In this document: positions 1,065-64,000 of the stretch, in pieces | Layout of the letters: each line of letters starts with the position of its first letter | Position numbering within the stretch: the stretch's first letter is position 1 | Assembly (NCBI GenBank): GCA_000320545.1 | Contig: ADNK01002544.1 | Coordinates: 1-64,000, forward strand | Origin: Bigelowiella natans CCMP2755 | Lineage: Eukaryota > Protista > Cercozoa | Direction: 5' to 3' | Length of the DNA stretch: 64,000 nucleotides | Position numbers and translations under genes: made by a program | The notes under the pieces: generated by a model | Databases searched by the model: none | What the model saw: only the letters and a program-made list of their open reading frames with translations | What the model was told of the DNA's origin: nothing

Positions 1065-3605
1065 GACGGATGTGCAATGAAGTGATGCTAAATCTTTTCA
1101 ATGGTCATCCTAATCTAGCAACTTGTGGTGTCGCATGTGACACATCGCTATGTTGTGAAGGCACAGCAGCCTAGACAATTGTGCACGCACACACGCGCAT
1201 GCATGAGGTCATTAGCAGCTGCTAGAAAGTGGCGTGCGTGCACGCCAACTGCTAGACAACGCACAAATGCATTCGCGGCACACACGACACATGTGCATGC
1301 CACACATCTGTGCACATGCGATGGACAAATTTGGAACACTCGATGGTGAGACCTCAGAAAAGAAAAAATCTGAGGCATGCATCTCAAAATGGAGAAATGT
1401 TTGCAAACCACATCCATCAGACGAAAAAAAATCGAAATTTTCACAATGAAACCGAGAACTGGAGAAACACCTTCAGAGATGGAGAAGACAAAAAAGTTCA
1501 CAGCGACTCCTGTGATGGAGAATTCACCATGGAAGAGCCAAAAAAAATGCTCAATGCAATGTCTCCATGCAAGTCCCCAGGTGATGATGGTGTTCACCTC
1601 AATGTGCTGAAGAAAAGTGCCAAGTTGCACGAACTGTGGATGGAAGTCTTCAACACATCACGTGGATGGGGTGCTCGAGATCGTTCACGCAAAGCGGCCT
1701 TGTTTTGTCTCATTCCAAAACCTGGCAAAGAATTGAACACCCCTTGGAACGGAAGAACGATCCCCCTTCTCCAAATGGCTTCAAAAGTTGAAGACAAACT
1801 CATCGAACTTCGCCTCCGTGAAGCAATTCCACCGGAAAACATTGGCAAACATCAACATGCACTTGTGAAAAATGGATCTTGCGAAACAGCTTTGACCAAG
1901 ATGACACAGAGAATCGAAGATGGGGCACACAATGAAAAGCTTGCAGGTGCAATGTTGTTCACAGATGCCTCCAAAGCACATCCGAAGGCCTGGCATTCCG
2001 GCATGATGCGCAAATTGTGCGAAAAACATGAAATCAGGGGTTCCTTGTTGTCATGGATCGATGACTGGCTCAGAGATCGCACTGCCAGATTCAAACTTGG
2101 CAACACTGTGTCTGAGCACATGAATCTGGAGAGTGGAGTTCCAGAAGGCTCTTCCCTTGGCTGTTTTCCACTTGCAACGTGCCATGATGCACATGAATGC
2201 ATGAAAAGTGCTGATTTTCAAGTGCACTGTGATGATGTCACTCCATGCAAATCACTTTCTCCAAGGAGGTGGGGGAAAATGCAAAATGACATTCAGGAAG
2301 ACCTGACCAGAATGACAGAATGGTGCATGAAATGGCGGATGCGATTCAATGGAGACAAGAGCGGACATCCAATCATTGATGGAAGAAACACACCCCACCA
2401 ACGCCAAGCTTCGTGGAACATCAATCTGAATCTCCAAGGAAAGACAAAAAGGGTCGACAGCGGGAGGTGTCTGGGATTGGTCTTTGATGAAAGGCCAACC
2501 TTTGAAAAACGTGCTCTTGCTGCACACCTGAAGCTGCAGAAGAAGAGAAGGTTTTTGTCAAGATTGTGTTGTTCGAGATCCCTTGTGCCATCAAGTGTGA
2601 GATTGAAGTTTTGCAAATCATGGTTCATTGCGACCAGTGGTCAGTGGCTCCCACGTGGAGATCTCGAAAAAACTTGCGAACACAACAGGTGGATTCATTG
2701 GAATCACAAACTTTGAAAAGAATTTCAGGATCACCTGGCTCTGTTCCCAATGATGTGCCTCACGTTCTCAGCGGTGCACTGCCACCACGATGTCGTGCAA
2801 AAGTGCAATGTGCCAAGTCTTGGTTGCGCACTGGTGCTTGGATCAATGATGGTGATGGACGTGAAGCATGTGAAGAAATGTGCAATTGGAGCAGTTTTGG
2901 TTTTCACATTGAAGAATTCCAAAAACGCTGGAATGAAGCATCTCCACATCGCCGGCTCAGCTCAATTTCAAACGACTCACTGGATGATGAACCTCCTGCT
3001 GTTCTGACAACAAGAGAAGCACTCAAGAAAGATCTTGAGAAGCGCTCACAAAGTGATCAAATCCTCTGCATTCTCTGCCTTTGAGGAAGAATGGTCTGAT
3101 GATTTGGAGAGCCACGCAGCTGAAAAATCTTGGATTTCTCCCATCTTCTCAAATCACTGGCATCAGATCAAAATCACCAAGCATTGCAATCACATGGATG
3201 CGTGCCATTTGTGGGCTCGACAATCTTGGCAAATTCACGTTGTCCAGAGGACAATGTGAAGAAGCAGATGCCACACGTGACGTGTGTGGAGTCGTGAAAG
3301 ATGTGGATCATCTCCTTCAATGCGAGAAACACGAACATCAACAGCTCAGATTTCGCAATCAATTGAACGCACACCATCATGAATCGAAACGATGAGACAA
3401 AACTGCTTTCTGAGACAGAAAAAGAAGCAAGAACTGCTGCGCGCACTGCAAGACATCGACGACCGGATGTAGATGCTTTCAAATGCATGAAACACATGAT
3501 GGAAGAGACAAATAGATGCAACATGAGCGCTAGCTGTAGGCGCTGCTTTGCATAGCTACATTAGGATGACCATTGAAAAAATTTAATCAATTCATTACAT
3601 CCGTC
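1065..3605. mobile_element. Imperfect ~50-bp terminal inverted repeats (1065-1119 and 3555-3605) bracketing LINE copy A; probable non-autonomous DNA transposon hosting the LINE
   Basis: The reverse complement of 1065-1119 (GCTAGATTAGGATGACCATTGAAAAGATTTAGCATCACTTCATTGCACATCCGTC) aligns with 3555-3605 (GCTACATTAGGATGACCATTGAAAAAATTTAATCAATTCATTACATCCGTC). A third copy of the right end lies at 32130-32206. Confidence 0.7.
1320..3525 (+). mobile_element. 5'-truncated non-LTR retrotransposon (LINE) copy A: degenerate RT plus C-terminal zinc-knuckle region
   Basis: ORF 1310-2716 has LINE RT motifs (KSPGDDG, LIPKPGK, FTDASKAH, GVPEGSSLG, HCDD for YxDD, RCLGLVFD for KYLG). It continues through frameshifts in ORFs 2566-3084 and 3081-3395 (xDVCG..DVDHLLQC). 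It is collinear with the copy starting at ~61945. Confidence 0.95.
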
Positions 3606-4208
3606 TCATATGTACGCAAGGCAGCAGTGGCTGCTACAGCGCCTGACATGTATGTGTATGTGTATGTATATATATATGTATATATATATACATGTACATG
3701 CATATATACATATATCTAATTGATGAACCTAGTGCATGTATATGTTTAGAATAAAATAAGAAATCTTGGAATAAATAAAGTATCTCTATTTCGCCGACTC
3801 AACTCAATTACAGACAACCTACTAGCTAGATGACATGAGCTTCCTGCTACATTATTCGAACGACAACAGGAGCACTTAATTAGCTTGTGTCTGCTATATA
3901 AGCTAGATTTAATTATAGGTTTTTTAAAATTCGTAATCTGGCTAGTATAAGAAACAATTTTGCTATCACAGCAACATATATGGCGTAACTCTAACTGAAA
4001 ATAACAATGATTCACAAGATTTGTAAAACTATTTGGTTGAAAATTGGCATTTAGGAGGAAGCCAATTACCACCAGCATGCCGCCACGCTTACAAATATTT
4101 GCGAAGAGTGGCATTGTGGCATTGCATGTGTTCTGTCTTTAGATCATGCATGACCTGGTGTAGGAGATTCTCTGTGTTGTCACTTAACAAATAAGCAGAT
4201 TTAGTAAT

Positions 4209-12843: not shown

Positions 12844-12950
12844 CTGAAGCAGAAAAAGAGGCCAGAACTACTGCACGTACTGCACGACATCGACTACCGA
12901 AAACAGATGCTTTTAAATGCATGAAACATATAATAGAAGAGACAAAATAC
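12843..12950 (+). mobile_element. Short 3' fragment of the same LINE family that retains its TpA sites
   Basis: Aligns to ~3410-3515 (EKEARTxARTARHR...DAFKCMKH..EET) and directly follows a (TG)n tract. Confidence 0.85.
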
Positions 12951-15143: not shown

Positions 15144-15830
15144 GTGGAAAACACGGAAGTGCTTCGAAAGGGGATTGCCATGGTTCCGGAGAATTGCCCA
15201 ACTCCTTGGAAGTGGATTGGCACCAACTCACTCAATGGAAAACTTGCGAGCGTCCAAGTGAGGAACAAAGCAACACGTTTGGATGTTGATCTGAAAAAAA
15301 GAAAGCAGCCAAAGTCTTCCGAGCACCCTCACAAACGATCCAGACCAAGCATTGAACCCCTCAAATCCTCAAAGGAGGAATTGAACAACGCGACAATGGA
15401 CTCGCGTTTGGATGACCTTGAAAAAATGTTGAACAATGGTCCCCAGCCTTTCAACTTGAAAGGAAGCGGGGGGACGTGGTTGATGTGGCAGAAAACACCA
15501 CCAATCAAGTGCCAATTTGTGATGGAGCCACTTCACAGCACGGTGGAGGTCAGAGCAACTTGCAAACCTCCAAAAATTGCAAAGGATTTGGGCAAATTCG
15601 GGAGAAAAGGGCAACAGGCCGGCGACACAAAAGACACATTGCGTTGCATCGATCGCCACTTCACCGGGAACGTGACACACAATTTCGCGACAACGGTGCC
15701 AGGTGACTTGCTCCTGACCTCTGCCACCTGTGCGAAAAATGACCATTGGGCAGGCGTGGATGTCCCATCAGTCACAAAAGAACAAACGATTCCAGGAGCG
15801 TCTGACGATGACGACGAACCAGACTTTTGA
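15144..15830 (+). pseudogene. Unknown 228-aa ORF inside the transposon block, possibly an accessory or cargo gene
   Basis: Protein-like composition with an acidic C-terminus (SDDDDEPDF) and no Tyr, oriented divergently from the transposase. No family recognised. Confidence 0.4.
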
Positions 15831-18735
15831 CAAACCCCTTCTCATCCCGTCATCCCCACGCGAATGAAGACTTCATTGCCTCGACCACCGCAGAGACAGA
15901 CGCCCACGTGTTTCCTGAACATTGAACAACCTGAGCTCGACACTGTGCACAAGGAACTGGTTGCATTGAAAGGTGATTTTTCTGTTCCTTCTTCGCGTGA
16001 GAGTGGTGATGACGAATGCGAACACTGTAACGGCGGAAAATTTTGGCAGAGACAGAAGCCGACACTGGGAGGATGCTCTCAGTGGTCGCAAACACGACGA
16101 TGATTGCGACCCACACGAGGCATCCGAGGACCACAAGAGCGGCGATTGCGACGACAGCAGCGCCACTCTCGGTTCCGCGGATTCTCTCTGCAGCTTGGCC
16201 TCTCGGCCCTCTGAATCTTCCTGTCGGCCCAGTGACGAGGAGAGTGTGATTTCCAACAACCGAAACGACAGCGGTTGTTGGGATGATTGCAGCAGCCAGA
16301 GGGCCCAGAGACCCACCCACAGAGAGAGAAAGGCTCTGGAGGCTGACGCAATTGACCTGATTTCATCGTCTGGATCATCGTCAGACGATGATGCCATTTT
16401 GTCATCCATGGGTTTCTGACAAAGCCCGCATCTGCACCACGAATCCTGATGCAACCATGTTGTGCACGTGCGTGAGCCAAACCTGCTGGCTGTGATGCAC
16501 TGCAGTGCACGCAGACGCGCGCGCGCCCGTCTGCCCGTCGTCTGGCCGTTGGAAAAGGATTGGCCGTCAGATCGGTGACAGTCGTCACAACTCGTGCTTC
16601 AATTGACACCCAATGGGCCCAATGCCGACTGACCGATTGCGCATGCACTTTGCCCCCTTCCCGCTCGATCAATTGTGAGCGTTGCGAATGGCACACGCTG
16701 GCACGCAACGCAAGCGCACAAAACGCAGCAAAGCGCTCGATGTCATCAGAGGCGAAGAGAAAGTGGCACGAATGTGAGGCACGCAGAAGCCACTTTGTGT
16801 CAAAACAAAAGTGCGAGATGGCTGGCCAGGTGCGCTGTCGTGAGGTGACAATGCGGTGAAATGAGCACATGCATGCTTCCCGCGCCCATCAAACCGACGT
16901 GCAATGATCAAAGGTCAACATCAACGACACATTGCGCCCTTTTGGCGCTGGAACGCGTGATTTGACAATGCCCATTGAAAACAAAACACTCAAACCCTGA
17001 TGATGAAAATGCATTGTGAGGAGCTTGAGCATGCATGCCAAAACAAGCTCCCAAGAGGACATTGCCGCTCGCACGCGGGTCTTTCAACTTCACCGCTCGC
17101 ACGCGGGTCTTTTGACTTTTGAGTGTGCGTTTCACTTTGCTTCAACTAGCTTGGTTGAACACATCACATCACGCCATTTTTGGATTGAAAAAACAACATT
17201 TTTTCCCAACATCATTTCGCTGACTTGTGCTGCAAAAGTTCCCTTTTGCAACCCAACTTTTTCCATGTCGCACTGGCCCAAGCGGGGCCAAAATGCCAAA
17301 ACTTGCCAACTGCTTTCGCACTGGCCCAAGCGGGGCCAAAATGCCAAACTTACCAACTCATTTTGTCCCCCCAGCATGATCTGACACACTGCTGCCAAAA
17401 CCAAACTACATCACAAATGCAAGCACACGCTTGGTGGTCATGACCGACCACACTGGTGGCAGCTGGAGTGGCCCAGATTGCCCAACATGAATGACGAAAA
17501 TTGCACTCTTCAGATTTGGGGTGAAATCAAAAAAAATTCCCTGGCTGACGCCGGCTAGCCGGGGCAAAACCGACGAACATGACACGGATCAAAAACCGGG
17601 GACTGAAACCCCCTTGCTAGCTTGCACCAGCTAGCCATGATGGACATGTAATGTGTTGTGCACATTGTGCATGCACCACATTGCTGTGTTGGAGTCCATT
17701 GTGAGCATTGCTGTGTCCATCACAGCCAGCTAACAGCTCACGCTAGCATGTGCAACTGCAAAATTGTGCAATGAACTCCAGAACTCAGCAGGTTAGCAAG
17801 GCACACATGTCCTCAAATGTCAAATGCGTTGCGATTGCATGCTCTCAAACAAATTAGTCATCACAAATGGTGCTGATCCAGCTGGTGGACAGTGGACACA
17901 TGCAAAACGAGGCAGTGCACATCAGATGCCTTTTATTCCATTGGTCGGAGCATTGTACGTGCAGATGTGCTTGTCGCATGTGACCCAGATCTCTCGTGGT
18001 GGTGCCTGGCTCATGCTTTGCGATCATGCAACAACGAGACACCAATGGTCAAAGTTCATTTGCAGAGTTTTAATTTCATCCACAATTAAATTATAAAGAT
18101 CATTTTGTGCTAGCATTTTACATTGGGTATGTTGTCTTATTCGTTTTGGGCACTTCTTTCGTCGTCGTCGTTTTAATTGTTCCCGTTCTCATCATCATCT
18201 CCAAGACCACCAGGAAGAATTGACCTACGGCAACAACGTAAGCATAGCATACAGGCACTTTAGAACTTGTACAGCACTGGACTTTGCCGCTTCTGCTAGG
18301 AGATAAAACTACGGATGCATGGCACAATAGAACAGTACGTACTACCTCAGGATTAAATGCAAAAAGGGTAATAAACACAGAAGAAAACATGACAACTGTA
18401 GATCATCTTTATGGCTGGAGCAATGAAACTATACGACAAAAGTACGGGATAATGATGATAACAATAATGATAAAAATTAGCAATGCTATATATGAGTTAT
18501 GGCAGTATTAACGACAGCAGTAACCTATCAATCCCCCGTGCTTTTTCTTCTTTCATCTATTAAAAACAAGGACAAAGACAACTCATACCACAATTCTCCC
18601 CTTTGTTATTTTCGTCCCTCATATGATCATCATAATCATCATTATTTATCATATCAGTGATGATGAATAAAGCAATTGGCTAGCAAGAAGTACCAATAAC
18701 TATTACAACATAACAGATGAATCGATGCATACAAC

Positions 18736-37600: not shown

Positions 37601-38353
37601 CAACGTAACGCCTTCTACTAATGGAGTTCCATACCTAATAAAAAGGCAAACAACTGATGATGAAGTATTCTTGTAGAGATGAAGTCTGGAGAGCCAAAAC
37701 CAGATGCATAGTAATAATCTAAAAGGTTGAAGAGAAGAAAAACATTTCTGTGTGGATACACTGCTATCGTGTCGTCGCTCTGGTTTTATTCAAACATACA
37801 CAACATCTACCTTTCTTGAGAAAAACCGTTTTCAGAGCTAAAAACCCCCGAGATACTTGCAGGAGTTTGCAATTTCCTTGCGAATTCACTGGCTTTGATC
37901 TGCTGCTGCTCTAGTGATATTGAATGGCTCGTGCCAGCTGCAGAACTATCCTCTTCCCCAACGAAATCTACACTTGCAGCTACTAGAACACTGCCGCATG
38001 CCAACGATAATTCAACGGCTGTATAGGTAAAAGGATGATAATAGTTACTTTTCGAATAGACACCAAAATAGCAGACGACGCTCATGCACATACATCTTGT
38101 GAATATGTGTTTATGCCGTATCTGCTCACTTTAATAACTTCATCACCTTCAATTGGCACAGAGGCACTATTAGCAATAGCTAAAGTAACATTTTCCCTCA
38201 AATTCTGAGCCGATGAGGGTGTGACAAGAACCACGCATGATAAATTAGGGAAGGAAGCTTCGAACGACACGGAAAAACCTGTTGAAAAATATATTTCATC
38301 AGAATGAGAAATAGCAAACCTACAACTAATATCATATGCAAATGAGTGAGAAG

Positions 38354-38393
<40 letters not shown>

Positions 38394-41343
38394 GACAGCT
38401 GTAGGAACAAACATGGTGATGTAATTGTAGAAAGATATATACAAACTCGCGCACAATTATAAACACAATACGTGTATTTGGTATTGAAGCTGCAACTATT
38501 CATTGTTTGAGTATACTACTTGTAACAGCAGCAGCAGTCGGGGAGAATGTGACGGGGGAAATAGTCAAAGGCGAAAGTGTAGTAGTCGCTAATGCAATTA
38601 TAATCAAAACAGGAGTAATTGCGATTGGTAAGAAGAACCAATATCAGTTGCTGGACACACTCTTAATAATATGTAATAATTCTTTGATATTGCCACGTGA
38701 GCCGCAAACGAGGCCTTCCAGTGAATATAAACTCAAATAATTCTCTCTCCTTTTCTCATTACAGAATATGATCATTGCACTGATCATCAGGGCTACAATG
38801 ACAACCAAAATAATGAACGTTATGGACACAAAAGAAACATCGTAACAAGTAAAAACATCATTCATGATTGTACTACTTGGAGAAAGCGAAGGAGAAGTGG
38901 TCAGCGTAATCGTCGGAGATGTTGATGGTGATTTTGTATTTGGAGATGATGTTGGTATTGATTGAGGTGTGATAGTCGGAACATTTGAAGAAGTAGAAGG
39001 AGAGTTTGTAGAAGGTATCGCAGTTGCTGTGGGGCATTCACTTGGAGAGATTGACGGTTCTTGCGTATTTATCTGCGAAGGAGATGTGGAAGATGGCGAC
39101 ATGGAAGGCGTGCAGCTTGGAGTTGAAGATGGATAATTAGATGAAGGAGATGTTGATGGCATTTGGCTGTGTGTTGGACAAGTGGAGGGAGATATCGAAG
39201 GGCTTTGAGTTGCTGTCGGAGTTGTTGTCAATGGGGATATGGATGATGGATGCACAGTTGCTATACTACTTGGACAAAATGATGGGACCTTGATTGTTGG
39301 GCATGTAGATGGTGAACATGAAGGCCTTTCAGTCGCCATTGATGGACAATGTGATGGGCTCGATGAGGGAGAATATGTAAGCGTTGGACATCTAGTAGGT
39401 GTCACTGATGGAACGCTCGAAGGAGATATTGTGGATGGGTTATGCGTGTTGTTGGCGAACATCGAGGGTGACCTCGTTGATGTAGGACAACTTGTGGGAG
39501 ATATCGATGGATTCATTGTTGTCTGCGTTGGTGATAGCGATGGTGATGAGGAAGGATTCTTTGTATCTGTTGGACACCTCGAAGGAGATACCGATGGTAG
39601 TTGCGTTGAAGCACTAGGAGCGGTTGTGGGATTCAATGACGGTGAGACAGTAATTGTAGGACATCGCGTGGGAGATACAGATGGATTTAGTGTTGTTATT
39701 GTTGGGCAACCAGATGGTGATGAGGAAGGATTCCTTGTTGTTGTTGGACATCTCGAAGGTGATACAGACGGTTGTTGCGTAGTCTCAGTAGGAGCTGCGG
39801 TTGGACCAATCGAAGGTGAAACCGTTATCGTAGGACAACGTGTGGGAGATACCGATGGATTAGTTGTTGTTCCTGTAGGCGTTAAAGATGGAGATGAAGA
39901 AGGGTTTCTTGTCATTGTTGGACACCTCGAAGGTGATATAGACGGTTGTTGCGTAGTCTCAGTAGGAGCTGCGGTTGGACAAGCCGAAGGTGAAACCGTT
40001 ATCGTAGGACAACGCGTTGGTGATAGCGATGGTGATGAGGAAGGATTCTTTGTATCTGTTGGACACCTCGAAGGAGATACCGATGGTAGTTGCGTTGAAG
40101 CACTAGGAGCGGTTGTGGGATTCAATGACGGCGAGACAGTAATTGTAGGACATCGCGTGGGAGATACGGATGAATTTAGTGTTGTTATTGTTGGGCAACC
40201 AGATGGTGATGAGGAAGGATTCCTTGTTGTTGTTGGACACCTCGAAGGTGATATAGACGGTTGTTGCGTAGTCTCAGTAGGAGCTGCGGTTGGACCAATC
40301 GAAGGTGAAACCGTTATCGTAGGACAACGCGTTGGTGATAGCGATGGTGATGAGGAAGGATTCTTTGTATCTGTTGGACACCTCGAAGGAGATACCGATG
40401 GTAGTTGCGTTGAAGCACTAGGAGCGATTGTGGGATTCAATGACGGTGAGACAGTAATTGTAGGACATCGCGTGGGAGATACAGATGGATTTAGTGTTGT
40501 TATTGTTGGGCAACCAGATGGTGATGAGGAAGGGTTTCTTGTCATTGTTGGACACCTCGAAGGTGATATAGACGGTTGTTGCGTAGTCTCAGTAGGAGCT
40601 GCGGTTGGACCAATCGAAGGTGAAACTGTTATCGTAGGACAACGCGTGGGAGATAACGATGGATTAGTTGTTGTTCCTGTAGGCGTTAAAGATGGAGATG
40701 AAGAAGGGTTTCTTGTCATTGTTGGACACCTCGAAGGTGATACAGACGGTTGTTGCGTAGTCTCAGTAGGAGCTGCGGTTGGACAAGCCGAAGGTGAAAC
40801 CGTTATTGTAGGACAACGCGTTGGTGATGCTGATGGATTGTGTGTAGATTCCGTAGGACAGACAGACGGAGAAGACGAAGGAGTTTTGGTTATTGTTGGG
40901 CATTTCGAGGGAGACACTGATGGTAGTTGTGTAGAAGCACTAGGAGCTGCAGTAGGACTAACTGATGGTGAAACCGTAGTTGTTGGACAACGTGTAGGCG
41001 ATATGGATGGATCATGAGTCGATTCCGTTGGGCACACAGATGGAGATGATGAGGGGGTCCTTGTTGTTGTTGGACATGCCGAAGGAGACTCTGATGGCAG
41101 TTGCGTTGAAGTACTAGGGGCAGTAGTTGATGGTGAGAGCGTAGTCGTAGGACATCGTGTTGGCGACAGAGATGGATTATGTGTAGATTCCGTGGGACAG
41201 ACAGACGGAGATGATGAAGGATTCCTTGTTGTTGTTGGGCAAGTCGAAGGGACTTTACTTGGAGAATCTAAGTGAATTTGCAGAATATTTAAAGACAAGG
41301 ATAACACTTTTGTGCGAAACTTCTATATATGAAGTTATTAAGA

Positions 41344-41382
<39 letters not shown>

Positions 41383-42377
41383 AGATGAGTATTTCAGCAT
41401 CCGTATGCATTATAAAGAAAACATCAAACCACAGGGAAATGAAAGTTGACTAGTATATGTATGAAAATTTGTATGTAACAATAATTAAATCCTCAATTCA
41501 CGACAACCTGATGGCCTGATCGTTGGTGCATTCGTAGGGTGTAAAGTAGTTGTTGGATTTTCAGTAGGTGATTGACTAGGTGAGCTACTTATAGGTCCAA
41601 GCGAAGGAGAATCACTGGTGGGAGAGCGAGACATCGATGGAGATAGTGTAGGGAATACAGACGGCGAGAAAGAGCTTGGAGATTGAGAAGGAGAGGTAGT
41701 TGTCGTAGGTGCTACTGATGGGCTGTGTGTCGGTGTATTCGTCATTGGACAAGCGGAAGGTACAAATGTAGTTGGGGTTGCGCTAATTGAAGGTGAAAGA
41801 CTAGGGCAATTCTGCAAAGAAACAAACACCAAAACCATAACTATATGAAAATGATGCATTTTGACGGCGAGGATGAATCAACAATAATGGCGATCGAAAG
41901 ATGTAAGATAGAATATTTTCTAAAAACAAATAACTATAGCTGGAGTGTGTGAGTAAAAAGAGCTGTGAATCAAATAGCACCATGTATCATCATTATTGCT
42001 CAAATTACGCTGAATTGTTAATACCGTTGGAGCATTTGATATTGGGGTTGTTGAAGGTGCTGTGGTGATGGTAGCTGTAGGTGATAAGGATGGTGAAGAA
42101 GATGGCGAGACAGAACTTGTAGGTTCAGATGTAGGTGATAGACTTGTTGGAGAATAACTTGATGGGGACATCGATGAGGGGCTTTTCGTAACTGTCGGGG
42201 AAATGCCTAAAACGTCAGCAAAAACACGACAAACAAAATTAAATTAGGACTATTTAGAATATCTATTTCATCAACCAGAGTAGCAAGAGACAAACAAACA
42301 CCTGAAAGGAAAGAAAGAGATGGAGAATCGAGGGAGAGAGAGGGGGGCGGAGATATAAAGATAAAAAACGAGAAAGA

Positions 42378-42413
<36 letters not shown>

Positions 42414-42617
42414 TATATGAGTGAGGAAAATAGAATGAAGATGACATCATTACTTGGAGAAACAGAAGGTGAATCGGAATTAGGGGAAAGTGATGGTATC
42501 GACGAGGGAGAACTCGTTGGTGATAGGGATGGACAAATCGTCGGCACCTACGATTACAGTTATAGCATTACGTGCATCTTATCTTTGTATAATAGCTTTA
42601 TTAATTGGAGAATAGAA

Positions 42618-42652
<35 letters not shown>

Positions 42653-45280
42653 ATTTAGCCATAAATTATCAAGAAGGTATGGAGAAAAGGAAAGAATAAA
42701 TAGGAGGGGGTGCAAGATTTAGATAAACAAGCTGACTACCTCAGTAGGCGTTGTAGTAAGAGAAGGACTTAGGGTTGGGGTGATGCTAGGAGCAATAGTA
42801 TTAGGGTTTTTGGACGGTGCATTTGAAGGTGATATCGAGGGGGAGAGGGAGGGAGATGTTGAAGGACAATTCGTCGCTATTGAAGGAGAAATGGTTGGAG
42901 AAGGGGTAGGCGCATTTGTAGCTGCTCGATTTGGTTTTGGAGGGAAAATGATGGTATCCCAGTCGGATGAGCAGCAAAATTAGAGCAAAGACAAAGAGCA
43001 ACGAAATCAAGAAATTAAAACAAGTTTTAGGGCAATGATATAGTTGGCGAAATATTCATCTGATACATCTTCACACGCTTTTCGAATACTAAATGATCTT
43101 TAAACTTTCTCTCTTTGGTGATTTTCTTTGTGTTTGATTCTATTGCGAAGAATTGCAAGCATTGGTATTTTCTAAAAAATAAGAATAAAAAGATTAAGTG
43201 TGTACTGACAAAGAGTTGGGTTCTGAGAGGGGGAGGTAGATGCGGGAAGAGAGGGAGAAGCAGAAGGAGAACTCGTAGGAGTAGTTGTCAAAGGAGCTGC
43301 TGAATTTGGAGATGATGTGGGAGATACTGAAACTGGGCTGTCAGTAGGATTTGTGGTTGGAGATGAGGAAGGAAGAAGAGATGGTGACACACTTGAAACA
43401 GAGGGGCAGAGTGTGTTGGGAGAGGCAGAAGGGCTATGGGTTGGAGAGGTTGTTGTTGGTATCCTGCTCATCAAACAAACACACATCAGCATACTTAAGG
43501 AAAGGAAGAAGATGGGCATACACAATTCGAAACAATCATCAAGAATCCATCATCATCATCATCATCACCACCACCATCATCATTATACACAGTCCTCCTC
43601 TCTGCTCCTATTCCTCTTTCTTCTCCTCCTTCTCCTCCTCCTCCTCCCTTTGTGCATCATATATCTCCACCTTGTTGGTGAATGGGACGGACTTGATGAG
43701 GGTGCTATTGTCGTTGGATGGTGCGACTTTATAGTAGGAGATGTAGTTGGAATATTGGTTGGAGAATGTGTTGGAGATGACACCGGTGTAGCTGATGGAG
43801 AGCTACTGCTGGGATGCAGCGTTTGGGGACATTTTGTCGGTTGAATGGTTGGAGTGCTAGTCGGTACGTGTGTTGGAGATTTCGTTGATGGAGATGATGA
43901 AGGAGATAAGGGAGACCTGCTGGGTGAAAACGTTGGACACGCTGAAGGTTGATAACTAGGATTATTAGTCGGTGTGCTTATCGGTGATCTCGTAGATGGC
44001 GATGTTGAAGGAGAACTACTGGGTTGGAGAGTAGTAGGAAGCTTTGTTGGTGATATCGTAGAGGGTGATACCGAGGAGGGAGATTGGGAAGGATGAGGCG
44101 TGGGGTATTTCGTTGGCGAGTTGGTCTCTGGTGACGACGTAGGCCGATATGTAGGAGCTGCTGAAGGCTTGTATGTTGGAGTCTTTGTGGGTGCAGTTGT
44201 CAAAGGGCTTTTGGTTGGAACATCCGTAGGTGATGTTTGAGGATTTTGAGAAGGCGGGGGAGTGGGATATTTAGTAGGCGATGTTGTCGAAGGACTCAGA
44301 GAAGGCTCGAGGGTTATTGGCGCTTTTGTTGGGGAAAGTGTTGGATACTTTGTCGGTGATATTGTCTGCGGACTTTGAGTGGGTTGTTGAGTTGGAAAGC
44401 TAGTTGGCTCGGGTGTGGGAAACTTCGTAGGTGATGTTGTTTGAGGGCTCTGAGAAGGGTCGGGGGTAGGATATTTAGTAGGCGATATTGTCGAAGGACT
44501 CTGAGAAGGATGCGAAGTTGGGAAATTTGTAGGATCTGGTGTTGGGTACTTCGTCGGTGATATGGTTTGAGGACTCTGAGAAGGATGCGAAGTTGGGAAA
44601 TCTGTAGGGTTGGGTGTTGGATACTTCGTGGGCGACGTTGTCGAAGGACTCTGAGAAGGGTGTGGAGTTGGAAAGTTTGTGGGGTCAGGGGTTGGATACT
44701 TCGTCGGCGACGTTGTGTGAGGACTCTGAGAAGGGTGTGGAGTTGGAAAATTTGTGGGGTCGGGGGTTGGATACTTCGTCGGTGATATTGTGTGAGGACT
44801 CTGAGAAGGGTGTGGAGTTGGAAAATTTGTGGGGTCGGGGGTTGGATACTTGGTCGGCGATGTTGTGTGAGGACTCTGAGAAGGGTGTGGAGTTGGAAAA
44901 TTTGTGGGGTCGGGGGTTGGATACTTCGTCGGTGATATTGTGTGAGGACTCTGAGAAGGGTGTGGAGTTGGAAAATTTGTGGGGTCGGGGGTTGGATACT
45001 TTGTCGGCGATGTTGTGTGAGGACTCTGAGAAGGGTGTGGAGTTGGAAAATTTGTGGGGTCGGGGGTTGGATACTTGGTCGGCGATGTTGTGTGAGGACT
45101 CTGAGAAGGGTGCGGAGTTGGAAAGTTGGTCGGATCGGGTGTTGGATACTGCGTGGGCGAGGTTGTAAGAGGACTTCCAGAGGGTGCAGGCACAGGATTT
45201 CCCTTCGTTACACCCATGCTAATACCAATTATGATAAAGGACAACAATTGCATCGAAGGATGCGGCATCGTCCACAGCAT
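32893..45280 (-). CDS. Very large mucin-like surface protein: signal peptide, P/S/T repeat stalk, SEA-like segment, several TM helices, long low-complexity tail
   Basis: Hydrophobic N-terminus (MQLLSFIIIGISMGVTKG). PT/PS repeat exons span 38.5-45.2 kb. Exons at 37.8-38.3 kb include LACGSVLVAA. Hydrophobic exons at 37450-37540, 37170-37310, 36870-37090, 36630-36720 and 36240-36355. Phase-compatible hydrophilic exons run down to ~32893; joining of the tail exons is tentative. Confidence 0.65.
39470..41250 (-). repeat. Higher-order coding repeat of Cys-containing mucin units (PSxSP[ST]RCPT)
   Basis: Near-identical blocks of a few hundred bp are reused in varying order within ORF 38644-41307. 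Confidence 0.9.
44490..45150 (-). repeat. Coding tandem repeat, 75-bp unit (PHPSQSPHT[T/I]SPTKYPTPDPTNFPT)
   Basis: GAGGACTCTGAGAAGGG recurs at 75-bp spacing (44719, 44794, 44869, 44944, 45019, 45094). Confidence 0.95.
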
Positions 45281-46207
45281 CTCTCCCCAATCTGTTCAGA
45301 ACGATATTCATTCATCACTGAGATAGTGTCAAATTTCCATATAAAGAAGGAAACCCATAATTTGTCAACCTCACCGGGTTTCATTATCTTACATGTACTA
45401 TTGAATAAGAATAAAAGCATGGTTCCATTGGTCTACCGTTGGGTCTCCGCGAGGGAGGGGAGACGTGAAAACTGAGATAACCTCCTGGATAACTCTGTAC
45501 TTTTTCTTGTCCGTACTACATCTAAAAAACAATTCGTAAATCTATTTATAGATGCTTATTCATGTGAAGACTTTCTCTACGATGATGCACCACCTCTAGA
45601 TATCTTCGTACGATGTTTACAGCATTAAAGATATTCTAAATTGAGATGTTACAGTACTTGTCAAGGGCTGCTCCTTGTTAATATACTCCTGGAAGTTCTG
45701 CACACAAACCAGCAGTAGATCTAATAACAGCACCAGATCGAGCTAGTAAGTTACTAGTAACTGATTTGCACACGTGCCGGAATCATCAGTTATCAATGAC
45801 CGTAGGTTAATGCTTTGACTTACAACTTTACATGTTGTCGCAATCAATAAATGCAACGGAATGTCTACTTCTATGAGTAAGCTCTTAGACATTTCTTCTT
45901 TTTGGTTGTCGCACGTAAAGAACAGAGAGCATTTTAATTGTGCTGCTTGAAGTTCCCAGTGTGGGGGCGCATCCCTGCTCTCCTCTAGTAGATCAATACA
46001 CATCACACTCTCTGCTTCATGGTGGAGTGGTGGTGGTGGCGATGAAGCCGGTAGCAGGAGCACTTGCACAAAGTCAACGAAATTGGGTTAAAACTTGGCG
46101 CTTATCTCCTCTCCACCTTAAAAAAGGGGGGGGATTCCACACTACAAGACGATTTCCCCAGAATAAGAAGGAAACGAGTTGACGCTGATTTCGCCTGACA
46201 GCAAATA

Positions 46208-57250: not shown

Positions 57251-58688
57251 TACGACGATGTTCTTCCATCACTGTGTTGTCTGTTAGTGACATTACAAAG
57301 ATACTTTGTGAAGTGTAACTGATATAAACGAGCTATAATTATGTTAATGGTGTGTTTTCTTTCCTTCCTCATGTGTTCATCATGTGAATAATGTCAGGAT
57401 GCACATCAAAATCTAAGAAGGAGCATCAGCGCAAGAAGAAGGCATCAGGAATAATGTATATAGCAAGGGGACAACTTGATGACCAAAATGACGGTATTAG
57501 CCATTTTGAATGAGTTTCATTGCACTAATAACATAGTAATATTCTCGTCGACGTCGGCCGAATGCCATGCATGTAGTGATCGCAGCGGGAAGAACTTTAT
57601 GCTGTATATATGCGCAACGTTTGTATGACTTCAATGCTAGAATGCTGCCAAATGGTCTAGTAGTGAATAACACGCGTGTAGCTAGCTCAATGGCCACGTC
57701 AAGATGCATGCTCTAATGAGTATGTCTAGATGTCTAGGACTGAATAGCCGCAATGGTGCCCAAACTCATTACCTACGGTTGTACGCGGTATGCGTGCTAT
57801 AATAAATACAACGCATGCATCGTGTGACAATCGCTGTCATTACAACCGCCAATAAAACGTGGGTAATCTTAGACCCGGCTAGCTGGCGGCTAACTTTTCT
57901 AGCTAACTAGATGTGCACACAATCTAGCAACATGCACAGCTGAAAATTATCACTATAAGATCACTAGCTAGCTAGATCACAAAAAAATGCAAAGTCGTCA
58001 TTCACGCATGCGATTTTTTGGGGGCGCTAAGTAAATTGTGAACATTTGCCTTCTCTAGTACGTCCTCTGGCATCATTGCGGTGTGAGTCTGTTTTTGTGC
58101 ATTTCACGGCACATTTGGCCTAGCAGCGCGCAGACTAGCAGCTGACGAGCTAGCGAGGGCGATCAGCACATGCATTGCACGCACTAGTGCATGACATTGC
58201 ATGTCTGTGCATGCTTGCCTCTTTTTCTGCGTTGGTTAGTAGCTTTGTTTCATCGTTTCGATTCACAATGGCGTTCAATTGATTGCGAAATCTGCGTGAG
58301 CTGTGGGTGTTCGCATGCCAGCATGTCTCGCATTGCGCAGGAGATGATCCATGCCAGCATGTCTTTCACGACACCACACAGATCATGTGAAATGATGGAC
58401 ACACATGCACATGCAACTGTCACATTTTGACCAGAATTTGTCCATTTTGCGCACGCAAATTCTGCACAAACATTGTCTGTGCGCGGGCAACATGACGCGA
58501 ACGAAGCAACAGCATGCAGCAGCATCGCAGCAGAGCCAACTGATGCACGCAAATGTGACTTGCAAGGCTGCAGGAGGCACATCAGAAGGCATTTTTGATG
58601 GGTCATTTGGAGCGATTTCAAGCACCTCGCATGCATGCTAGCAGCGCCTCACGGGCACCAAAATCATTTTGCGAGCTCACAATGACCT

Positions 58689-59118
58689 CACAAGTCCGTC
58701 AAACCTGCAACGAATCGCCAGAATGTGCATTTGGAAGCTTTTGCGCGCGACCAAGCGCGTCACAATGTGATGCGACAGAGATTGGATTTGCTCGCATTTC
58801 TTTGAAATTTTTCGTGCATGTCACATTTGGTCACACGCACACGCAAAAACATTCAAAATGTGGCAGAGAACAAACGCGCAGCGTGCATCCGCTACACAAC
58901 GGGTGTGGCTTTTCACACTTTGCGCGCTCACTGAGGCCTTGAAAATGGACATTTTGGTCAACATTTCGGTCATTTTTTGAGGTTTGGCCATCGGACAAGT
59001 TCTGATGACTTTTCTTTGACTGACTGCAACTGCCTGCTAGCCTGCATGCTGCTTCAAAGCGCGTCGCAAGCGCTGCACTGTTCACAACCCCGTCGTTGCC
59101 GGGTTTGACGGACTTGTG
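58689..59118. mobile_element. ~430-bp MITE-like element with ~26-bp TIRs
   Basis: CACAAGTCCGTCAAACC-TGCAACGA (58689-58713) matches the reverse complement of 59093-59118 (CACAAGTCCGTCAAACCCGGCAACGA). The right end is partly duplicated at 59119-59131. Confidence 0.75.
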
Positions 59119-59131
59119 TGACGGACTTGTG

Positions 59132-59218
59132 CATGTGTTTCATTCATGCATTTGAAGGCTAGAAGGCATCCACATCCGGTTGTCGATGTCATGCAATGAG
59201 CGGCAGCAGTTCTTGATT
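59132..59218 (-). mobile_element. Inverted 3' fragment of the LINE family
   Basis: The reverse complement reads CAAGAACTGCTGCCGC...GACATCGACAACCGGATGTGGATGCCTTC...AAATGCATGAA, matching ~3428-3495. Confidence 0.75.
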
Positions 59219-59257
59219 GTGGACACAGTAATAGCACATGCATTATGTGCATGATCG

Positions 59258-59301
<44 letters not shown>

Positions 59302-59346
59302 CAAACGGACTCATGGCCGCGCACAAGTGAAACATTGCCCACCGTG

Positions 59347-60776
59347 ATGATCACGCGCAGCGCGCGTGGCAACAACAAGCACCAGACACCCAAAAAGGGA
59401 AGAAAGCACAAAAAGAACCAACACGCAACGTTGGATCTCGATTCAGAATGCAATGATGACGACTGTGGCTCTGACAGGAAAAGTCATGATCTGTCTCAAT
59501 GCCTTCGCGAAGTTACTTCAACACTGTCTGCAACAATGGAACGCAAAGAAACTCCTCAGTGGAACACAATGAAAAAATTGTGTGAAATGCTGACCACAAT
59601 GGTCCAGTTAGTTGATGAGAAACAACAACAATTGCAGCAAGATCAAAAAGACATGCAGGAGGAAAACGCTGGGCTTGAAAACAAATTGCTGAAACTTGAA
59701 GAAGAACTGACTTGCATCAAGGAACATCAGAAGAATGGCACAATGGAAGCTCAACCCTCCTCGATGCAACGGACCTCGAGAACTTGCGCTAGTGTCACAA
59801 CCTCATCACGCGCTGATGAACCTCATGGTCGAGATGAATGTCCTGAAGCAGAAGTACAAAGACTAGCTGAGCGAAAGAATGGCCAGAGTTGGCAAGTTCC
59901 AAAAAGTCACGCCAGGAATCAAAGGAAATGCAACCGGAAGTATGAACAGAACGTGCTCATGTTGGAACTTGACAAAAAAGCCATGCTGCAAGCGGGGGGC
60001 GCCATTGTGGCCTCCGGCGACCCATGTCGCACTGTTCTCACTGGCAAAAAAAACATGCCAACGAACCAACAAGTGAGGAAACAAACACAGCAGATCCGAG
60101 GGATGAAAACCGCGACACACTGACAGAAGTTAACACCGAGGAAGAAGAGACTAAATGCCTAGCCGGAAAGAACGTAGAGGATTTGAACCCATCCAGTGAA
60201 AAAAAAGATGTTCCAGATATTGGGAAAAACCTGTCCAAAATAACTCCAAAGTTGATCGATGCACTAGGATTGAACGAATTCCAAATGCACGTAGCTTTCC
60301 AAGCGAAATATGGGAAGGACTTTCAAGGAATCCAATTCAAATCTAGGAATAAAACCCACCTAAAAGTGTTCTTCAAAGGCTCCAGAGAATCTAAGATGGA
60401 TGCTTACCTGGATCTGCTTAACACCGAACATCAGTTAGGACAAGGATCATTCCTTCCCTCACTCTTTGGATTAGTGACCACAGTCAGAGCAGCTAAGTCA
60501 AGGCCAAGTAAGCACTCTGTAGTTCTGAGAGGCCCAAGGCTGGGACCTAACGAGCAGGAAAAATCAACACGAATTGGAATCATCAAGCAGATAATCGAAA
60601 CCAACATCGATGTAAAAGTCGCAGCAATAGAACCTCTCGGCAAGGGCCCTCTACTTCAGCTGTTTGTGCACTCGCATGAAGAGGCCACCAAACTGCTGAA
60701 TTCACAAATCACATATCAGGGCAGCTACCTACGATTCAGGGCATATGAAAACAGAAGGACACGTAAATATGGTTAA
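59347..60776 (+). pseudogene. LINE ORF1 (coiled-coil nucleic-acid chaperone) with one frameshift
   Basis: Starts MITRSAR and has a Q/E/L-rich coiled coil. ORF 59245-60123 shifts to ORF 60024-60776, probably at the A run near 60046-60053. Confidence 0.75.
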
Positions 60777-63700
60777 TCATTTGAATCTCCCCTACTACTA
60801 CCAAAACATACGCAGTAAAAACGGAACTGAACAAGGCAGGCAAAGAATAAATAGAAGATATAATATGTTAAAAGAAATGATAACCACCAACAACATCGAA
60901 CTCGCCTGGTTTGGGGAAGGCCGCCTCAAAGAATCGGAGAGGCTGCATCCTCCAGCGGGATACGAAGTGATTCGGACGAGCGGCTCCTCTGGGAGCTTTG
61001 GATTAAGAAAAAAGAACACAGATATAATTCATATACCTATAGATGATAACAATTACGATATTAGTTTTTTCATACACAGCATTGAAAAATATGCTGTCAT
61101 AATGGTGTACCTCCAGCCACACCAAAACATCTCACATCTGAAAGAGAGATTAGATTTCATAATGAACATCATTCGGAAACAGAAATGGAAAAAATACATC
61201 ATCGTGGGGGACACTAATGCTAAACACTCCACCTACGATGTCCGAAACCAAGAAGATAGACGTGGCAGATACCTACACCAGTGGTTGTCGGATAACAACA
61301 TCATGATGGTCAACCCTGGGGAAGCCACATATTTCAGAAAAGGAAACACAAGCACACTTGATCATGTGCTGTGCTCCTCAAACTTCGCACACCAAATAGA
61401 ATATCAGATGGCCAACACCACGACAAGTGACCATTTCGGTATCCACTTTGGAAAACCTGTGGCAATCCATCAACAGACTTCACCAATGATATATGACATC
61501 GACAAATTCGATGTAAAACGATTTGACGAAAAATTGAATAATATTACCGAACGCTTGCACCAGCGCATACTAAACGTTCAATCGGAGGCTGATGCAAAAA
61601 AGCTTGAACGCTGGTTCTGGGACTTTACCGGAAAAGCTTTTAATAGCTGCACACCAAAAAAACGACAACGTTGGAGTCCAATCAAGCCATACCAAAACGA
61701 CAAAAAATATAAATCCATCAAAGATCAACAAGAAAAATTATTTAGATCCTTGAAACACGAAAGGAAATTTCGGAAGAGAAAATTATTAGAAACCAAGATC
61801 CAAGAAATCAACACCGAACTTGAACGAACCACCGAAACCCTTCAGTACGAAGCATGGCAATTATTCTTGTCTCGCTTCGAAAAATACAACAATGGGAATC
61901 ATACCAGAATGCTGTACAAATTATTCCAAAAATCCAGAGGGCGGGATAAATTCGGAGGACTCGATGGCGAAACCTCTGAAGAAAAAAAATGTGAAGTGTG
62001 TGTTGCCAAATGGAAACATATCTACAAACCACACCCGTCAGACAAGAAAAATCGAACCTTTCACGCTGAAACTGAGGCCTGGAGAAATACCTTCAGGAAA
62101 AATGAAGACAAAAAGATCCACAGTGTTAATTCACACAACAGAGATTTTTCCATGCATGAACTAAGAAACGTGATCAACAAAGCATCACCGTACAAGTCTC
62201 CTGGCGATGATGGTGTTCACCTAAACATGTTGAAAAAAAGCAAGAAACTCCATCAACTGTGGTTAGCTACATTCAACACGTCATGTAGATGGGGTACCCG
62301 AGATGGCTCACGCAAGGCGGCCATTTTTTGTCTCATCCCTAAGGCCAACAAAGAACTTGACACCCCTCTCAACGGGAGAACGATTTCTCTCCTACAAATA
62401 GCTTCAAAAATGGAAGACAAACTAATAGAACAACGGCTCCGCGAAGCTATACCCCCCAAAAACATCAGCACACATCAGCATGCATTCATGAAAAATCGAT
62501 CCTGCGAAACTGCACTCACAAAGATGACGCAGTCAATCGAGGATGGAGTGTGTGACAAAAAGCTTGCAGCCATCCTGTTGTTTACAGATGCCTCTAAAGC
62601 TCATCCAAAAGCCTGGCATTCCGGCATGATGCGCAAGTTACATGACAAACACGGAACACGAGGCTCGCTATTGCTGTGGATCGACGACTGGCTCAGAGAT
62701 CGTACCGCCAGATTCAGATTTGGCAATGCTCTCTCTGAGCACATGAACCTTGGGAGCGGCGTCCCCGAAGGATCATCTCTCAGCTGTTTCCTGTTCACAA
62801 CCCATTGCGACATTTACGAACATGTTGCCAACACAGATTTCCAAATGTGCTGTGACGACGTTGCCCCCCACAAATTGTTTTCGCCAAACCGATGGGGGAA
62901 AATGCAAGATGATGTCCAGGCCGACCTAAACCAAATGACGGACTGGTGCATGAAATGGCGGATGCGATTCAATGGGGACAAGAGCGGGTGCCTTGCAATT
63001 GACAAAAGAAACAAAGCCCACCGACACCAAACCTCCTGGAACATCTCTCTCAATCTCCAAGGAAAAATGAAAAGAGTCGACAGCGGCAGATGTCTCGGAC
63101 TGATCTTCGACAACAAATTGACCTTTGAAAAACATGCTCTTGCTTCTCACCTGAGATTGCAAAAGAAGCGAAGGTTTTTGTCAAGGTTGTGTTGTTCCAG
63201 ACACCTTGCACCGCTAAACGTCAGACTGAAATTTTGCAAATCATGGTTCCTTGCATCCAGCAGATGCGCTGCTCCAATGTGGAGATCACGAAGAAACACA
63301 CGAATGAAACAGATGGATTCCATGGAATCCCAAACCCTGAAACGCACATTGGGATCACCTGGATCCATCTCCAACGACGTCCCCCACGTCCTCACTGGCA
63401 CGTTGCCACCCCGATGTCAAACTGAAGTGCAGTGTGCTGAATCATGGTTGCGCACCAACGCATGGATCGACACAGGCAGCGGTCCTCAAATCCATGAGGG
63501 AACAAATGATTGGAGCAGTTGTGGCTTCATCATTGAAAATCGAAAAATGTTGGATGGCACATCGTGGATTGATGTGGCCACACACACGTGGAACAAAGCA
63601 TCCTTGTTTCGACGGCTCAAATCGATCACTGACGACTTGTTAGGTGACGAATTGCCCACCGTTTTGGCGACAACAGAGGCGCTGAAAAAAGAACTGAAAA

Positions 63701-64000
63701 AACATCACAAGGTGATGAAATCTTGTGCTTTCAACGAATTCGAAGAGGAATGGTCCAATGATTCATTGCGCGCTGTGCATCTCAAGAATCTTGGTTTCCT
63801 CCCGTCATCTTCGATCACCGGCATCAAACTGAAACTTCCAAGTGTTGCTACATCGTGGATGCGCGCCATCTGTGGTGTCGGCAATCTTGGCAAATTCATG
63901 CTGTCACGTGGACAATGCACAGAGGAAGATGCCACGTGCGATGCATGTGGCATCCTGAAGGACATGGATCATCTCCTGCAATGTCCAATGCATGGTCGAG
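60769..64000 (+). CDS. LINE ORF2: APE endonuclease + reverse transcriptase + CCHC knuckle; open to the window end but RT motif mutated
   Basis: Absent from the supplied ORF track, probably because it has no stop in the window. Manual translation from ATG 60769 (overlapping the ORF1 stop) is uninterrupted: YYQNIRS, IVGDTNAKH, TLDHVLCS, SDHFGI (APE); KSPGDDG, DASKAH, GVPEGS, CCDD, RCLGLIFD (RT); CDACG..DMDHLLQC. Confidence 0.95.
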   Translation, partial: MVNHLNLPYYYQNIRSKNGTEQGRQRINRRYNMLKEMITTNNIELAWFGEGRLKESERLHPPAGYEVIRTSGSSGSFGLRKKNTDIIHIPIDDNNYDISFFIHSIEKYAVIMVYLQPHQNISHLKERLDFIMNIIRKQKWKKYIIVGDTNAKHSTYDVRNQEDRRGRYLHQWLSDNNIMMVNPGEATYFRKGNTSTLDHVLCSSNFAHQIEYQMANTTTSDHFGIHFGKPVAIHQQTSPMIYDIDKFDVKRFDEKLNNITERLHQRILNVQSEADAKKLERWFWDFTGKAFNSCTPKKRQRWSPIKPYQNDKKYKSIKDQQEKLFRSLKHERKFRKRKLLETKIQEINTELERTTETLQYEAWQLFLSRFEKYNNGNHTRMLYKLFQKSRGRDKFGGLDGETSEEKKCEVCVAKWKHIYKPHPSDKKNRTFHAETEAWRNTFRKNEDKKIHSVNSHNRDFSMHELRNVINKASPYKSPGDDGVHLNMLKKSKKLHQLWLATFNTSCRWGTRDGSRKAAIFCLIPKANKELDTPLNGRTISLLQIASKMEDKLIEQRLREAIPPKNISTHQHAFMKNRSCETALTKMTQSIEDGVCDKKLAAILLFTDASKAHPKAWHSGMMRKLHDKHGTRGSLLLWIDDWLRDRTARFRFGNALSEHMNLGSGVPEGSSLSCFLFTTHCDIYEHVANTDFQMCCDDVAPHKLFSPNRWGKMQDDVQADLNQMTDWCMKWRMRFNGDKSGCLAIDKRNKAHRHQTSWNISLNLQGKMKRVDSGRCLGLIFDNKLTFEKHALASHLRLQKKRRFLSRLCCSRHLAPLNVRLKFCKSWFLASSRCAAPMWRSRRNTRMKQMDSMESQTLKRTLGSPGSISNDVPHVLTGTLPPRCQTEVQCAESWLRTNAWIDTGSGPQIHEGTNDWSSCGFIIENRKMLDGTSWIDVATHTWNKASLFRRLKSITDDLLGDELPTVLATTEALKKELKKHHKVMKSCAFNEFEEEWSNDSLRAVHLKNLGFLPSSSITGIKLKLPSVATSWMRAICGVGNLGKFMLSRGQCTEEDATCDACGILKDMDHLLQCPMHGR

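Follow-up and report, generated by a model that had tools for sequence, protein, structure and literature searches.

Mutation accumulation in Bigelowiella natans has been followed by Mettrop et al. (bioRxiv, April 2026, doi 10.64898/2026.01.13.699255), who reported that integrated giant-virus (nucleocytoplasmic large DNA virus, NCLDV) and virophage regions have a mutation rate approximately 1000-fold above that of the remaining genome. Nearly all changes were A>G or T>C; they fell without exception on TpA, giving TpG or CpA depending on the strand, and they were local and not genome-wide. Moreover, TpA-depleted coding sequences (CDS) were enriched for reverse-transcriptase, endonuclease-reverse transcriptase and DDE domains, and an ADAT2/3-type adenine deaminase acting on DNA was proposed as the agent. 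Here, we analyzed a stretch of 64,000 nucleotides from B. natans CCMP2755 (positions 1 to 64,000, forward strand, of contig ADNK01002544.1, assembly GCA_000320545.1; hereafter the window), which contains two long interspersed nuclear elements (LINEs), copy A and copy B. We read both copies as carrying the footprint of the TpA-specific A:T-to-G:C hypermutation of B. natans, with a probability of about 0.9. The process is already known from Mettrop et al., and the finding, although real, is not a new system. What these authors measured were NCLDV and virophage inserts and not individual retrotransposon copies; the words CTAG, context, trinucleotide, retrotransposon and tyrosine are absent from the main text of their preprint, and a literature search found no further paper on a TpA hypermutation process. 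What the LINE copies add is polarisation copy by copy, limits set by the element, an all-or-none state with one intermediate, random strand choice and a slower conversion of CTA and TAG sites.

Other mutational systems resemble the LINE hits in part. Fungal repeat-induced point mutation (RIP) likewise produces transitions that are specific for a dinucleotide, affect both strands and saturate mobile DNA while its flanks are largely spared; however, it runs in the opposite direction (CpA to TpA), enriches TpA, creates stop codons and is triggered by duplication before meiosis (PMC3318451 and established knowledge). The LINE family, in contrast, comprises at least 15 near-identical repeated copies that are untouched, has acquired no stops and changes in the reverse direction. 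Editing by APOBEC3 or ADAR enzymes also inactivates mobile or viral sequences through hypermutation of the deaminase type, but it acts on single-stranded complementary DNA (cDNA) or RNA and leaves strand-coordinated, asymmetric clusters that are fixed at copying, whereas the LINE hits are strand-symmetric, interleaved and accumulate in resident DNA. ADARs also favour U before the edited A (Mettrop et al. 2026, discussion). Finally, methylation-deamination decay of CpG produces reciprocal TG/CA differences between copies, as seen here, but it needs an ancestral CG and depletes CpG, whereas the ancestor of the LINE copies had TA and their CpG is not depleted.

Copy B is a full-length element that runs beyond the end of the window (Table 1). 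Its 5' end was placed at 59302, where at least 11 copies begin to match at 99% (query position 1502-1503), and its 3' end lies 21 nt past the stop of its open reading frame (ORF), at the point where the copies diverge, approximately at C1193:64260. The genome holds at least 10 further full-length copies of this family together with many 5'-truncated ones, which share one common 3' end. An identical 1164-aa ORF is open in the copies L001 and L002, and a 1179-codon open frame is kept in 8 of 10 full-length copies. Pfam profiles matched the copy B ORF at residues 117-233 (Exo_endo_phos_2) and 532-751 (RVT_1), the YCDD box being located at residue 702. By its predicted apurinic/apyrimidinic (AP) endonuclease, its reverse transcriptase (RT) with a YxDD motif and its 5'-truncated copies, the family is an AP endonuclease (APE)-type non-LTR (long terminal repeat) retrotransposon, i.e. 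a LINE. Young copies are more than 99.5% identical within the element, where 3121 columns contain 12 informative sites. No match was obtained when PDB sequences were searched with the ORF of a sibling copy, and hence no solved LINE RT as an outgroup for the YxDD motif. Copy A belongs to another subfamily, and its sole relative is a partial copy (L032, contig C436) that is 85-87% identical over part of its length. Regarding copy numbers, the summed depth of contigs from one public run over 60700-64000 increased from approximately 1950 in the 5' part to more than 18,000 towards the 3' end, and the window-specific alleles had a depth of approximately 128; this profile suggests about 15 full-length copies and more than 100 3' fragments of the copy B family.

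A global alignment of positions 1320-3400 with positions 61945-64000 comprised 1998 columns and was 73.3% identical, the differences being 350 transitions and 183 transversions. Among dinucleotides, copies A and B differed most often by CA in one copy and TG in the other, which occurred in 54 columns compared to 7.8 expected under independent neighbouring columns (Poisson p = 2.5e-27), whereas the remaining double-transition classes accounted for 0 to 16 columns each. Such reciprocal pairs had been noticed in a previous reading of the window that used its letters alone (hereafter the sequence-only reading), and the alignment confirms them. The codons that it quoted are also all in place: the RT active sites CAC-TGT-GAT-GAT (2225) and TGC-TGT-GAC-GAC (62848), TGC (2246) versus CAC (62869), GCA-CAC (1925) versus GTG-TGT (62548), a run of seven codons at 2180 versus 62803, and the triplets CCG-TAC-AAG, ATC-TAC-AAA and GAA-CTA, in which copy B keeps a TA where copy A reads CCA-TGC-AAG, GTT-TGC-AAA and GAG-CCA. 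In total, ten His/Cys codons are reciprocal between the two copies. The dinucleotide TA itself is strongly depleted, with an observed/expected ratio (rho) of 0.09 at 1101-3600 and 0.10 at 62501-64000 versus 0.8-1.0 in unique parts of the window. These belong to five TA-depleted islands (rho 0.09-0.17), in which CA (1.3-1.5) and TG (1.8-1.9) are raised without a fall in CG. Between copy A and L032, which are 87% identical, CA/TG is again the commonest difference (32 columns), and copy A was therefore hit independently of L032.

Reciprocity of CA and TG is, however, also the classic pattern of CpG decay, in which deamination of methyl-cytosine turns an ancestral CG into TG on one strand and into CA on the other. 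In the alignment of the two copies, columns pairing CG with TG or CA are indeed more numerous than those pairing TA with TG or CA (56 versus 18). What separates the two ancestral states are the intact relatives of copy B, nine near-identical copies on other contigs (L002-L010; hereafter siblings), whose column-majority states were used solely to polarise sites. Copy B differs from nine unanimous siblings at 52 positions, and 50 of these private changes are A>G (28) or T>C (22), while 46 of the 49 with readable context fall in TpA. In direction and context, in affecting resident DNA and in a rate far above background, the LINE hits are like the process described by Mettrop et al. Among the 66 reciprocal A/B columns of the multiple alignment, all nine siblings carry TA at 23, the state of copy B at 42 and CG at none, and at the ten reciprocal His/Cys codons they encode Tyr (7) or His (3) but never Arg. 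The sequence-only reading had deduced an ancestral TA and had named CG or Arg in intact relatives as the sign of CpG decay; TA is what the siblings carry where they polarise the columns, and the absence of CG and Arg refutes CpG decay for these columns. In addition, the observed/expected ratio of CG is 0.8-0.95 in the elements whereas that of TA drops to 0.02-0.4, and the private changes run from A:T to G:C and not from C:G to T:A. We consider the chance that CpG decay produced the pattern to be negligible.

The RT active site is I-YCDD in the siblings, M-CCDD in copy B and HCDD in copy A, so that the YCDD ancestor deduced previously is seen directly. The further claim that mutation took place after insertion and independently in each copy stands for the changes that are private to copy B and for the CA/TG differences between copy A and L032. 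It does not extend to the 42 of 66 reciprocal columns at which the state of copy B is shared by all siblings and hence came with the source element instead of arising in copy B after insertion. With this restriction, the hits occurred post-insertion and copy by copy, and they are strand-symmetric, limited to TA, modulated by the flanking nucleotides, bounded by the element and far above the background rate.

The private changes of copy B form a patch with graded edges (Table 1). In consecutive 250-bp bins between 61944 and 63693 the converted fraction of TA sites was 1/8, 3/13, 10/16, 11/14, 9/9, 8/9 and 4/5, and in 60444-61943 none of 81 TA sites was converted. Over the whole comparison, 48 of 160 TA sites of copy B were converted, whereas only 8 of 3453 other positions (0.23%) differed from the sibling majority. 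A comparable specificity was observed in L017 (56/63 TA sites versus 7/1737 positions elsewhere, 0.40%), and in L013 and L014 139-143 of 150 ancestral TA sites were converted. Across 30 copies the conversion state is bimodal, with 15 young copies carrying 0-4 conversions. All ten copies with at least 2% divergence outside TA are saturated (76-97% converted), whereas 15 of 17 young copies are unhit (Fisher p = 8e-6); the exceptions among the young copies are L017, the only saturated one, and copy B, the only intermediate.

The limits of the hits coincide with those of the element. Inside saturated copies the TA rho is 0.02-0.18, and most of their flanks have values of 0.7-1.6. Copy A does not contain a single TA between 1254 and 3469 (2.2 kb), those between 1052 and 1253 are all in CTA or TAG contexts, and the (TA)n-like microsatellite that follows its 3' end is intact (Table 1); conversely, two unhit siblings are located in TA-poor surroundings. 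Given the element-bound loss of TA, the intact (TA)n tail and the unhit siblings in TA-poor DNA, the process follows the element and not the region. We also considered a positional sparing of the last 150-650 bp in hypermutated copies, which was rejected given that the surviving sites there are mostly CTA or TAG.

An intermediate such as copy B could also be produced artificially or by recombination, namely if its patch was an assembly chimera or had been acquired by gene conversion from a hypermutated copy instead of arising in situ. Misjoins are possible in a family with more than 99.5% identity, and public contigs collapse it: in Logan contigs of three DNA runs and one RNA run (32 reads) mostly the sibling alleles were present. 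However, the patch is graded rather than saturated, its pattern of TG and CA shows an agreement of no more than 50-65% with any of 11 saturated copies, and no pair of copies shares a pattern, which argues against both gene conversion and chimeric assembly. Furthermore, the alleles of the window were found at approximately single-copy depth in contigs of an independent 2025 run around 62793-62847. We therefore regard such an origin of the patch as highly improbable.

Two observations on other copies concern the all-or-none state and the 3' limit of the elements. The young, 5'-truncated copies L016 and L017, which lie approximately 16 kb apart on contig C1853, are untouched (1/69 TA) and saturated (56/63), respectively, and would be a good natural pair for locating a targeting mark. 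At the 3' junctions of the LINE copies (L001-L030), TCTCA is followed by short (TA)n-like runs, many of which are scrambled to CA, TG or CATG, while those of L013, L016 and copy A are mostly TA; these tails could either be a TA microsatellite that is carried or targeted by the element or a record of partial conversion.

With respect to strand choice, TG and CA outcomes occurred at ratios of 27:20, 73:66 and 70:67 in three copies, and their order along the element was random (runs test z = 0.9, -1.6 and 0.4). The earlier claim that both strands are hit independently is thus borne out in copy B by 28 A>G versus 22 T>C changes and the first of these z values (0.9). The same data bear on the idea that LINE RNA and/or first-strand cDNA was edited during retrotransposition by an ADAR/ADAT- or APOBEC-like enzyme, in which case a copy would arrive hypermutated. 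Bimodal copies and hits that keep to the element and spare its flanks and tail are what such editing would leave behind. It predicts a strand asymmetry, though, whereas A>G and T>C changes are close to 1:1 and randomly interleaved in the three copies. Moreover, the hit state tracks the age of the copies (2/17 young versus 10/10 old), and Mettrop et al. saw the same changes build up in resident single-copy DNA of DNA viruses in culture. Editing of an intermediate is therefore very unlikely in our view, and we infer double-stranded resident DNA as the substrate because RNA or cDNA intermediates would give a strand bias.

The flanking nucleotides affect conversion. Within the patch, 37 TA sites in a DTAH context were converted and 7 were not, versus 7 converted and 15 unconverted among those preceded by C or followed by G (p = 5e-5). 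In saturated copies all surviving TAs with readable flanks are CTA or TAG, and in the TA-depleted islands of the window CTAG makes up 27% of the surviving TAs compared to 2.8% in the background (p = 1e-14). The outcome at flanked sites is again approximately 1:1 (29 TG and 27 CA for CTAH; 16 and 16 for DTAG), and the flank therefore slows the whole duplex site and not one strand. Table S2 of the preprint by Mettrop et al. shows the same tendency, since G follows the mutated A in 23 of 236 entries (9.7%) versus approximately 18.5% expected, an approximate figure given that the expectation was taken from the background of the window and not from the region of the preprint.

Considering these data together, we propose that a process acting on resident chromosomal DNA converts TA to TG or CA. 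Either strand of each TA is equally likely to be hit, and the order of the outcomes along the element is random. A copy is either untouched or driven near saturation, with copy B as a rare intermediate that carries a graded patch, and C before or G after the TA slows conversion, leaving CTAG as the typical survivor. The underlying reaction may be adenine deamination in double-stranded DNA at the duplex palindrome D-TA-H. Targeting, in turn, might involve a switch-like, element-delimited mark, whereby a locus would enter a targeted state and would then be driven to saturation. From the preprint (211 mutations, 6169 TA sites and 3132 generations) we calculated a rate of approximately 1.1e-5 per TA site per generation. 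At that rate the patch would need approximately 1e5 generations, over which the element should gain only about 0.1 background mutation, and this matches the near absence of other private changes in copy B.

Several points weigh against attributing the pattern to this hypermutation process or to the deamination of adenine. That the patch and the untouched 5' half of copy B are linked rests on the reference assembly of a family with more than 99.5% identity, which the Logan contigs collapse. Most young, near-identical copies are untouched, and repetition alone is therefore not the trigger. In addition, a thymine-modifying route leaves the same footprint, as TA is its own reverse complement: instead of adenine deamination, the thymine in TpA could be modified (5-hydroxymethyluracil or base-J type) and mispair with G, resulting in T>C. 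Owing to the palindrome, T>C and A>G cannot be distinguished by strand, and the equal effect of the flanks on both outcomes fits any enzyme that reads the duplex. A search of the genome with the Tet_JBP profile gave no match, which does not show absence, and one A_deamin match (ADAR/ADAT1-type) was found, on contig C2414:14438-15741; both results speak against thymine modification, but as support for a deaminase they are weak evidence. The preprint by Mettrop et al. further identified an ADAT2 homologue with residues that are linked to DNA editing. Overall, we consider the thymine route unlikely, although less so than an edited intermediate or a chimeric patch, and favour deamination of adenine in TpA.

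The consequences for the encoded protein follow from the dinucleotide. Compared with its siblings, copy B has 13 synonymous and 41 missense codon changes, among them 10 cases of Y>C, 6 of Y>H, 6 of I>M and 5 of I>T, and has gained no stop; 16 of its 39 tyrosines were lost. In L013 only 2 of approximately 39 tyrosines are kept, again without a stop in 1184 codons. Stops do not arise because both Tyr codons contain TA and a change from TA to TG or CA cannot turn a sense codon into an in-frame stop. By the genetic code, the same change can remove stops or turn TAA into TGA. Indeed, copies of the older subfamily use TAA as the stop codon of the ORF (window-equivalent 64237-64239) and those of the young one use TGA, whereas L007, L020 and L027 carry a CAA there, by which the open frame of L007 is extended to 1255 codons; these variants are the result of the mutator acting on the stop codon itself. 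The sequence-only reading had anticipated a missense load without stops that includes the conserved Tyr of YxDD, and the substitution of CCDD for the YCDD of the siblings agrees with this; on this basis, hit copies would have lost their RT activity. It had also counted the Tyr of a conserved KYLG box among the losses, which was not borne out: every intact sibling reads RCLG at this box, and that Tyr was therefore not lost after insertion. A Cys in the RCLG box is compatible with recent amplification.

The stop codons and the RCLG box also relate to a more far-reaching reading, in which the mutator would read duplex D-TA-H as a unit within a switch-like, element-delimited domain that was caught part-way in copy B, and in which source LINEs would survive partial hits and pass them on. 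For such inherited hits we cite the TA-poor 5' and 3' ends of every young copy, the RCLG box and the TAA (older) versus TGA (young) stop. The 5' part of the element (Table 1) is TA-poor in every copy and therefore inherited from the source element; the 3' end of the young family (63522-64000) has a TA rho of 0.06 and is likewise TA-poor in every copy, whereas the TA content of the ORF2 body is ordinary. The source element may thus have survived partial hits and passed them on. We hold this wider reading only tentatively and think it rather doubtful as a whole. Past hits in the ORF2 body of the young family, for which the TA rho is 0.57, were rejected, as its TpA frequency of approximately 0.044 is ordinary compared to 0.041 for CDS in the preprint by Mettrop et al.

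Table 1. Coordinates of the LINE copies and associated features (window positions).
Feature	Position	Strand	Description
Inverted LINE 3'-end fragment	1065..1119	-	82% identity to element B positions 4956-4907 (blastn); a short distance upstream of copy A, in the same TA-poor island
Copy A	1323..3608	+	LINE from another subfamily, truncated at its 5' end; 72% identity with B (blastn versus element B); saturated with TA conversions
Copy A RT active site HCDD	2225..2236	+	CAC-TGT-GAT-GAT
Copy A 3' end	3470..3600	+	nine surviving TAs: seven CTA/TAG, two DTAH within the last 25 bp
(TA)n-like microsatellite	3609..3720	.	adjoins the copy A 3' end; not converted; marks the 3' limit of the hypermutated domain
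Copy B	59302..64000 (runs ~260 bp past the window end to C1193:64260)	+	full-length; young APE+RT LINE family
5' part of family-B element	59302..60200	+	10 TA, rho 0.19; TA-poor in every copy; siblings 99% identical
ORF2 of copy B	60745..64000 (stop at 64239, outside the window)	+	intact 1164-aa frame
Hypermutated patch private to copy B	62134..63521	.	45/47 converted TA sites (47 = 27 TG + 20 CA); graded edges, near-saturated centre, 1.4 kb
Copy B RT active site	62845..62859	+	ATA-TAC to ATG-TGC; private A>G at 62847 and 62849
RCLG motif ('KYLG' box)	63088..63099	+	Cys in copy B, copy A and all siblings; no private change at 63091-63093

Elsewhere in the window, the regions 12901-14300 and 14901-18100 are TA-depleted islands (rho 0.11 and 0.10; CA 1.4 and TG 1.8). 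Both strands contain long open frames there, Pfam gave no match, and the islands are probably other hypermutated mobile elements; in the latter island CTAG accounts for 5 of 18 surviving TAs. The segment directly upstream of copy B (58101-59301) is also TA-poor and includes a repeat of approximately 430 bp (58689-59120), of which the genome has more than 25 copies that are 88-92% identical, and across 58101-60200 CTAG makes up 10 of 23 surviving TAs. The region 38000-46000 has a very strong GC skew of +0.31 to +0.40 and a match to a PT repeat; long frames of 887 aa and 592 aa overlap on its two strands, and it looks like a low-complexity repeat gene or array that is unrelated to the hypermutation. 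On the minus strand, a 519-aa open frame at 7932-9491 combines, unusually, EF-hand domains with a TerD domain downstream of them. An Rfam scan of the window found nothing, and a dinoflagellate origin of the DNA (with 5hmU at TpA), which was considered at first, was rejected after a search for a spliced-leader relic had likewise found none.

For retrotransposons, the LINE copies provide a natural confirmation of a eukaryotic, genome-defence-like mutator that runs opposite to RIP. Any mechanism is constrained by the strand symmetry of the hits, by a flank rule that applies to the duplex, by limits that coincide with the element, by all-or-none kinetics and by an onset that is unrelated to copy number alone. 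Since their long frames stay open, hypermutated elements will be annotated as genes by gene-finding programs. If source LINEs do survive partial hits and pass them on, this would amount to an arms race that pushes active elements towards TA-free coding.

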